From Salpingoeca rosetta (taxonomy: Eukaryota > Protista > Choanoflagellata), in the NCBI GenBank assembly GCA_033442325.1, contig JAWQFM010000002.1, positions 1,272,642-1,315,081 of the forward strand: DNA of 42,440 nucleotides, written 5' to 3'. The first letter of the stretch is position 1; every line of letters starts with the position of its first letter. Under the pieces are notes generated by a model. That model was not told the origin of the DNA and did not search any database. It worked only from the letters and a program-made list of their open reading frames with translations. Both the position numbers and the translations under genes were made by a program. Below, piece by piece: positions 38,667 through 38,774 of the stretch.

Positions 38667-38750
38667 AACCGGAGGCCGTGAGTTCGAATCTCACCGGGCC
38701 CTCACCTGATTGGGGCTCGTGGCTTAGTTGGTTATAGCGCCGGTCTAGTA
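38667..38750 (+). tRNA. Circularly permuted tRNA-Thr(AGT), right copy: 3' half 38667-38702 (positions 38-73), spacer CACCTGATTG, 5' half 38713-38750 (positions 1-37)
   Basis: Joining 5'+3' gives GGGCTCGTGGCTTAGTTGGTTATAGCGCCGGTCTAGTA|AACCGGAGGCCGTGAGTTCGAATCTCACCGGGCCCT. Acceptor stem GGGCTCG/CGGGCCC, D-stem GCT/AGC, anticodon stem CCGGT/ACCGG with loop CT-AGT-AA, T-stem GTGAG/CTCAC with loop TTCGAAT, discriminator T73. Confidence 0.87.
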
Positions 38751-38774
38751 TCGCATTCATTTTTTTTCTCCTCG

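Follow-up and report, generated by a model that had tools for sequence, protein, structure and literature searches.

In a 42,440-nucleotide stretch of the genome of the choanoflagellate Salpingoeca rosetta (assembly GCA_033442325.1, contig JAWQFM010000002.1, positions 1,272,642 to 1,315,081 of the forward strand; hereafter the window, numbered from its first letter), the 3' half of a threonine transfer RNA (tRNA) lies upstream of the matching 5' half. We interpret this element as a functional type II circularly permuted nuclear tRNA-Thr(AGU) gene, opened between tRNA positions 37 and 38 and present at three loci, and put the probability of this reading at roughly 0.88. It is the first permuted tRNA gene that we could find outside algae and archaea. 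An earlier sequence-only reading of the stretch had proposed a functional permuted tRNA, a claim that now has indirect but strong support from selection between paralogues, a syntenic orthologue, transcription of the linker and the need for a tRNA that reads ACC.

Layout of the gene and recovery of the cloverleaf

The features of the unit and of its copies are as follows:

38628-38650, +: leader hairpin, predicted by constrained folds, with the A-box-like element TAGCCGCAAGG at 38633-38643
38652-38666, +: proximal leader, predicted by constrained folds to pair with the trailer and the anticodon loop
38667-38702, +: 3' half of tRNA-Thr(AGT), positions 38-73, 36 nt, with the B box (GGTTCGAATC-type T loop); order A38, ACCGG, AGGCC, T arm GTGAG-TTCGAAT-CTCAC, CGGGCCC, T73
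38703-38712, +: linker (intervening sequence) CACCTGATTG, 10 nt
38713-38750, +: 5' half of tRNA-Thr(AGT), positions 1-37, 38 nt, with the A box; order GGGCTCG, TG, D arm, G26, CCGGT, loop CTAGTA; anticodon AGT at 38747-38749
38751-38759, +: trailer TCGCATTCA
38760-38767, +: T8 run after the trailer, an RNA polymerase III (Pol III) terminator-like signal
25969-25886, -: second copy of the permuted gene, identical in sequence (3' half 25969-25934, linker 25933-25924, 5' half 25923-25886)
25885-25869, -: trailer and T8 run of the second copy
G000:C23:274250-274369, -: third copy (locus L003, hereafter C23), from the whole-genome search

Exchanging the halves restores a canonical cloverleaf in which the conserved tRNA nucleotides are present, and ARAGORN calls tRNA-Thr(agt) with all acceptor (7/7), anticodon-stem (5/5) and T-stem (5/5) pairs formed, as the sequence-only reading had said of its intact AGT cloverleaf. 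The half coordinates, the 10-nt spacing and the 37/38 break given in that reading were exact on the window sequence, and its T8 run does begin 9 nt past A37. The order of 3' half, linker and 5' half fits a type II permuted gene; the linker measures 10 nt in both window copies and 12 nt at C23. The order does not fit an archaeal split (trans-spliced) tRNA, as the halves are 10-12 nt apart and single RNA reads span both.

In its native order the gene escapes the standard tools: ARAGORN made no tRNA call on the window sequence, Rfam gave no match at the gathering score, and at relaxed thresholds the Rfam tRNA model matched the T arm alone (14.3 bits). Since tRNAscan-SE 2.0 also missed it (PMC6188563), the earlier expectation that standard finders would be blind to such a gene is borne out. 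The sole Rfam model to span the whole unit was YrlA (RF02553, bacterial Y-RNA-like), at 28.5-28.7 bits (E 5e-4); this score lies below the gathering threshold of 69 bits and does not place the unit in that family. The YrlA alignment runs through the T arm, an acceptor-like helix and the D arm in that order, and, judged from this alignment, the match is independent, structure-aware support for the permuted layout and not evidence for a Y RNA. Applied to the genome, the YrlA model returned only the three Thr loci among the 46 of 1161 candidates that were scored.

Three loci in the genome

Each half occurs at three places in the 55.4 Mb assembly (allowing ≤3 mismatches), always with the 3' half before the 5' half, and for this reason the layout exceeds chance. 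The 'two copies' of the sequence-only reading held for the identical minus-strand copy (25886-25969, once reverse-complemented, reproduces 38667-38750 without a difference) but not for the total, which is three, the third lying on another contig. That reading had found no other halves nearby, and at ≤3 mismatches there are none elsewhere in the genome. Both halves, the trailer and the T8 run of the C23 copy are 100% identical to those in the window, while its leader has diverged and its 12-nt linker is TT longer than CACCTGATTG (CACCTTTGATTG). This complete identity of the halves alongside a differing leader and linker is, as read from the alignment, the signature of purifying selection between paralogues.

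Probable source of tRNA for ACC and ACU codons

With tRNAscan-SE 2.0, Southworth et al. (2018, PMC6188563, Table S4b) listed only TGT and CGT genes for threonine in S. rosetta. In the words of the authors, Thr(AGT) is a gene that the species 'appears to lack', and they name threonine as the exception to a rule by which the major tRNA corresponds to the optimal codon; the top Thr codon in highly biased genes is ACC, with a relative synonymous codon usage of 1.90 in a table that is assigned to S. rosetta by its position in the supplement (PMC6188563). Capsaspora has conventional Thr(AGT) genes, and many S. rosetta tRNA genes contain introns (PMC6188563). The published S. rosetta list is also without Arg(TCT) (PMC6188563).

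Conventional genes were sought in the genome by patterns with a consensus T loop. A TAGTAA anticodon loop followed by that T loop gave 0 matches genome-wide (5 chance matches in the reversed-pattern control), and no Thr(AGT) gene with an intron of up to ~25 nt after A37 was found. When any first anticodon base was allowed, the conventional Thr(TGT) and Thr(CGT) genes were recovered, and no conventional Thr(AGT) or Thr(GGT) gene. A single CTGGTAA match, considered as a Thr(GGT) gene, is not a tRNA according to ARAGORN. These targeted patterns took the place of a genome scan with RF00005, in which 63 of 498 candidates were scored. Gene spacings agree with the published ones and mark the genome as that of S. 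rosetta, in line with the apparent choanoflagellate of the sequence-only reading: Lys(CTT) genes are separated by 758 and 7302 nt and by 2075 and 744 nt, as on ACSY01000655 and ACSY01000666, and 11,145 nt separate the two complete Thr(CGT) genes both here and in Table S4b (PMC6188563). The conventional gene that would have undercut the sequence-only reading thus did not appear in the pattern searches, nor did any stray half.

Codons ACC and ACT make up 41% of the Thr codons in the long open reading frames of the window. Decoding of ACC requires inosine or guanosine at tRNA position 34 (I34 or G34). Because no other gene that could supply such a tRNA was found, the permuted genes are the only candidates, and they are probably the only source of an ACC/ACU-reading tRNA in the genome.

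Permuted Thr(AGT) genes in metagenomes

Metagenome contigs were scanned for a T loop followed, after 19-49 nt, by a Thr(AGT)-like 5' half, which gave 39 loci, 13 of them examined in detail; one contig that was matched, L090, labelled as human gut metagenome, is not part of any comparison. Six candidates (L085, L064, L091, L094, L059 and L084) were rejected as ordinary tandem tRNAs, in which another tRNA immediately precedes a conventional Thr(AGT) gene; the upstream tRNA is Thr(TGT) in 5/6 and has the anticodon ACG in L059. The truly permuted loci form three groups: L061 (with two copies), L060/L065/L072 and L066/L080. In all three groups the upstream part is without a 5' half, the downstream part is without a 3' half, and a T-run lies past A37.

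Positions 812-2573 of L061 (MDTD01042756.1), which is a marine metagenome contig, contain seven blocks collinear with window positions 40144-41965, at 78-85% identity. In the window these positions hold an acyl-CoA dehydrogenase-like gene (+ strand) of at least seven blocks, presumably exons, whose order and spacing are kept in L061; L061 itself has an acyl-CoA dehydrogenase domain match, and its two permuted Thr(AGT) copies adjoin that gene. On the strength of the collinear blocks and the domain match, this sequence comparison indicates that a relative of S. rosetta retains the permuted gene beside the same neighbour. The search of relatives for the same half order, which the sequence-only reading had suggested, has thereby turned up a permuted and syntenic case. 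The gaps between the acyl-CoA dehydrogenase blocks are (GT)n-rich in both the window and L061.

The L061 and window tRNAs share a 31-nt identical stretch. Compensatory changes are found at 7-66 (G-C to A-T, in a pair that joins the halves), 50-64, 51-63 and 52-62, and one-sided changes at 5-68 and 6-67. Across the four distinct permuted sequences, pairs 2-71, 3-70, 4-69, 7-66 and 28-42 to 31-39 change on both sides and remain paired; the sole mismatch is 6-67 in L060. These pairs were counted by position; the MAFFT alignment misplaces the linker gaps. Retention of the two half-joining helices through many double changes is the pattern of a working tRNA that depends on its two halves coming together.

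The other two groups are also from eukaryotes. The L060/L065/L072 group (L060:1437-1517, - strand; L072:1419-1499, + strand) combines AT-rich sequence with a linker of 7 nt and has TATA-like boxes ~40 nt upstream, and the L066/L080 group (L066:859-945, - strand) has 54-58% GC and a 13-nt linker. The linker lengths of these two groups match none of those listed for known algal permuted genes. Aligned to the S. rosetta genome, L066 matched only in short stretches of ~30-65 nt scattered over many contigs, with no collinear blocks, and searches of these two groups against Pfam and a protein atlas gave no informative match.

Within the S. rosetta genome, a generic B-box-then-A-box pattern gave 24 matches, against 45 for a reversed control, and only the three Thr loci were real; this search for further permuted tRNAs was limited to the present junction layout, other cloverleaf junctions not being searched. 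The tRNAscan list for Monosiga brevicollis contains two Thr genes, both CGT, and neither AGT nor TGT (PMC6188563, Table S4a), so this species may hide unconventional Thr tRNA genes too. We tentatively propose, at somewhat less than even odds, that the permuted Thr(AGT) gene is an old feature shared across a choanoflagellate clade and one of a larger number of disrupted tRNA genes in these relatives of animals. This proposal is favoured by the synteny of the environmental relative and by the M. brevicollis table, with its Thr(CGT) genes only.

Transcription and putative promoter elements

Three 2026 RNA sequencing runs from the same species (ordinary 101-nt paired reads) were aligned to 38400-38776, with ≥3 reads as the threshold for detecting a back-joint. 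No reads from the three runs fell on 38400-38633. The first were in the bin 38634-38646, and coverage in one orientation extended from ~38640 across the linker to the end of that stretch. Reads span both halves, the linker holds no terminator and a T8 run follows the 5' half, as a single linear precursor would have it. All linker reads carried the TT insertion in two runs and 4/18 did in the third, and a loose read end reproduces the C23 leader. Since linkers with and without TT are present and the C23 leader is seen, both kinds of locus, window and C23, are transcribed. At window position 38753, 3/20 reads of run X10 have T for G, a variant that matches no copy seen and perhaps comes from a repeat unit elsewhere.

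The A-box-like element of the leader matches the consensus TRGCNNARNGG at 7/8 positions in the window and 8/8 at C23, 49 and 47 nt upstream of the B box, and is missing from L061. In constrained folds the leader hairpin is kept at the diverged C23 locus, partly by compatible changes. An A/T-rich patch, AATTTTGAAATGGCCAATTTT, lies ~60-80 nt upstream of A38, with no clear TATA box. Taking the leader for a decayed 5' half found no support: local alignment was no better than that of shuffles (p 0.27-0.56). To judge from its sequence and position, the leader element may be a substitute A box that drives transcription from the canonical distance to the B box. If so, the promoter would be compatible with TFIIIC, in contrast to the TATA-dependent arrangement put forward for algae.

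Predicted junction structure and proposed maturation

With the cloverleaf enforced, the window and C23 precursors are predicted to fold alike. The predicted junction has the pairs C32-G(-3) and U33-A(-4), a 3-nt bulge of A(-2), A(-1) and A38 that holds the 3' cleavage site, a helix between leader GAUAC and G35-U36-A37-U-C, and a closing helix of leader UGAA with trailer UUCA in the window, or GAA with UUC at C23. A 32:(-3) pair is present in 7/7 permuted Thr(AGT) genes (C-G in four, U-G in one and U-A in two); we take it to be the anticodon-intron pair that work in yeast and Xenopus found the eukaryal endonuclease to require at the 3' site. Leader-trailer helices are predicted in 4/6 folded precursors. 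In L066 the end of the trailer is predicted to pair with the far leader only, and in L060 leader and trailer show no predicted pairing. Because the 5' site is not in a bulge, the modelled junction looks like a relaxed motif similar to that of green algae. The genome encodes RtcB and has two loci for tRNA_int_endo, the catalytic domain of the splicing endonuclease.

The steps of the proposed maturation are as follows: Precursor: One transcript would begin ~25-35 nt ahead of A38, end at the T8 run and contain, in order, leader, 3' half, linker, 5' half and trailer, where the polymerase and the exact ends are those that we infer. Folding: The halves would fold into the cloverleaf, with the pairing of leader and trailer mimicking an open intron. 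Cleavage: The splicing endonuclease would cut after A37 and before A38. Ligation: By analogy with Cyanidioschyzon merolae, RtcB would join A37 to A38 and so produce a circle. End processing: RNase P and tRNase Z would excise the 10-12 nt linker, after which CCA would be added; linker removal may precede or follow circle formation. Modification: A34 would presumably be deaminated to inosine. The mature junction would read ...GGTCT(A/G)GTA-AACCGGAGG...

Alternative explanations

Several observations weigh against a functional permuted gene. In the RNA runs no read shows the mature 37-38 junction or a back-joint, in libraries of a type that rarely captures RNAs of 76-130 nt. Most reads pass the T8 run, which indicates read-through or longer transcripts and leaves the role of Pol III as one that we infer, and those over 38745-38776 may come partly from downstream tandem units. 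The RNA strand (+, the sense of the tRNA) follows from the stranded-library convention, uncalibrated on a known gene. The A and B boxes are reversed, with B first, and no TATA box is clear; the predicted folds contain no strict hBHBh' (bulge-helix-bulge) motif and place the 5' cleavage site within a helix. As to the genome, N gaps in the assembly and the use of consensus-T-loop patterns leave room for a conventional gene that is hidden in a gap or has an unusual T loop or an odd or long intron, and the two copies in the window may be one if the identical inverted repeat that carries them is partly an assembly effect.

The half order, or the duplicate copy, could in principle be an artefact of misassembly where the DNA is rich in repeats; N gaps and numerous microsatellites occur in the window, and the repeat arms are 100% identical. 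A DNA contig from a separate run, which may be the assembly's own source, spans 38400-38771 without differences, and the RNA reads of the 2026 study are continuous across 3' half, linker and 5' half. Because both span the gene in permuted order, the half order is not misassembled, which disposes of the alternative that the sequence-only reading itself had raised. The third locus, on a different contig, has the same order with its own leader and a longer linker, and environmental contigs carry it as well, so that the chance of an artefact is practically nil. Alternatively, two conventional Thr(AGT) genes in tandem could have lost their outer halves and left a decaying relic that is still transcribed by chance and yields no working tRNA. 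Precisely this layout is an intermediate expected under the tandem-duplication model (review, PMC3978253); the surrounding DNA readily undergoes tandem duplication, and the RNA runs gave no mature junction. A relic would hardly be expected to have halves 100% identical between loci with diverged leaders, or a syntenic orthologue whose stems carry four compensatory changes, among them 7-66, a pair that joins the halves; nor was another gene found for ACC, the most-used Thr codon. We regard it as very unlikely.

Slightly less credible still is a tRNA-like noncoding RNA that acts as transcribed, as a Y-RNA-like molecule or a regulatory mimic, and does not give rise to a decoding tRNA. Among Rfam models, one for a tRNA-like Y RNA does match the whole unit best, and the RNA reads show the collinear form before any processing. 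The 28.5 bits of that match are, however, far under 69 and follow simply from the order of T arm, acceptor-like helix and D arm. A mimic, moreover, would have no need of the conserved anticodon stem-loop, AGT, A37 and 32:(-3) pair, and the cell would remain without an ACC reader. The remaining alternative accepts a functional permuted gene and dispenses with the circle: RNase P and tRNase Z would cut the linker first, and the paired halves would be held together until endonuclease and ligase trimmed and joined 37-38. No result here fixes the order of the steps, but RtcB readily circularises tRNA introns in animals. Outside algae, according to a review, the pathway has yet to be established; in C. 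merolae, the circular intermediate has been shown experimentally (Soma et al. 2007; both in PMC3978253). We consider maturation without a circle improbable, at something like one chance in seven.

Comparison with known permuted tRNA genes

A 2014 review listed 34 permuted tRNA genes, all from algae or Thermofilum pendens (PMC3978253), and a 2026 review confines the eukaryotic cases to 'certain unicellular algae'. Our full-text literature search found no report of permuted tRNA genes in choanoflagellates, and a broader search on holozoans and opisthokonts gave none among its top matches, in line with the sequence-only reading, which knew of no holozoan report.

The closest counterpart is the type II gene of C. 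merolae (Soma et al. 2007; PMC3978253), which shares the leading 3' half, the 37/38 junction and the isoacceptor Thr(AGT), as well as a short intervening sequence serving as acceptor loop, a T-stretch after the 5' half and leader-trailer pairing at the junction, which for S. rosetta is predicted. Unlike that alga, S. rosetta is a heterotrophic holozoan, with three copies, linkers of 10-12 nt in place of the 24 nt of the algal Thr(AGT) gene (PMC3978253), no strict bulge-helix-bulge and no clear TATA-like box. For C. merolae, experiments have demonstrated both the circular intermediate and aminoacylation, whereas the S. rosetta case rests on sequence and transcription. The genes of Ostreococcus, Micromonas and the Bigelowiella natans nucleomorph (Maruyama et al. 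2010) are likewise of type II and have a relaxed hBH-type junction, which in the green-lineage permuted genes suits the ruler-type endonuclease of eukaryotes; their linkers of 5-64 nt compare with 10-12 nt here. They differ in belonging to green-lineage genomes, and none of those listed is Thr(AGT).

In Thermofilum pendens, the permuted tRNA-iMet and tRNA-Tyr genes (Chan et al. 2011, PMC3218864) are the sole sources of an indispensable anticodon, and their function was argued from necessity, as it is for S. rosetta. They differ in the junction (59/60), in a genome-encoded CCA and in the archaeal transcription and splicing machinery. Conventional eukaryotic tRNA introns, also at 37/38, share with the model proposed for the S. 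rosetta gene the cleavage sites, the 32:(-3) pair, the bulged 3' site and processing by TSEN and RtcB. The S. rosetta 'intron', by contrast, is open, its ends being the leader and trailer of the transcript, and for this reason ligation would close a circle instead of joining two exons.

Implications

Permuted tRNA genes have been known from a red alga, a few prasinophytes, a nucleomorph and one crenarchaeon, and the S. rosetta gene would extend this range to a heterotrophic opisthokont from the sister lineage of animals. It would also answer the published anomaly that S. rosetta 'appears to lack' tRNA-Thr(AGT) despite its preference for ACC (PMC6188563): the gene was reported missing because the permuted layout is invisible to standard tRNA finders. 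Since the tools are blind to this layout, protist tRNA inventories, and codon-adaptation analyses built on them, can err, and the metagenome matches suggest that further lineages carry unrecognised permuted Thr(AGT) genes. Should the feature prove to be clade-wide, the TSEN and RtcB enzymes of holozoans would handle permuted, non-canonical substrates of a kind thought to be confined to algae and archaea. S. rosetta is a culturable, genetically tractable model. It could thus allow direct tests of maturation, of the roles of RtcB and TSEN, and of the promoter problem posed to Pol III by a B box that precedes the A box.

Surrounding repeats and neighbouring genes

The two window copies lie in the arms of an inverted repeat and are each followed by a tandem array:

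37912-39737: right arm of the inverted repeat, ~1.8 kb, which carries the gene
24893-26724: left arm of the inverted repeat, ~1.8 kb
38745-39363, +: tandem array, period ~94-130 nt
~25267-25891, -: mirror of the tandem array

The arms are 100% complementary except for a 6-nt length difference across a (GT)n tract where the aligned blocks overlap. The tRNA genes in both arms face outward, and the repeat encloses a ROCO (Roc-COR) gene. Each tandem unit restarts at C32 (CTAGTA) and continues through the trailer TCGCAT(T/A)CA and a T7-T8 run to a spacer that contains (GT)n; the trailer motif has 12 matches in the window, against 0.01 expected by chance. The downstream units may act as back-up terminators. 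A tandem array is also found ~100 nt downstream of the C23 gene.

A similar arrangement surrounds Thr(CGT). At locus L016 (G000:C10:624323-627352), one complete gene is followed by at least 10 tandem units of ~125 nt, each made of the tRNA from position ~31/32 to its 3' end plus a spacer, and ARAGORN calls one gene only. An inverted partner lies near C10:636212-637009, and the complete Thr(CGT) genes are 11.1 kb apart and inverted. Because this inverted pair with its tandem units mirrors the Thr(AGT) architecture, the two suggest that both arose by one kind of duplication, with the anticodon loop as its starting point.

The ROCO-type gene between the arms occupies ~26967-37450 on the + strand, with a Roc match in the open reading frame 32523-34028 and a COR-A match in the open reading frame 34459-36357. 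Repeated units of 265 nt are found at 30533-32064 within the ROCO region.
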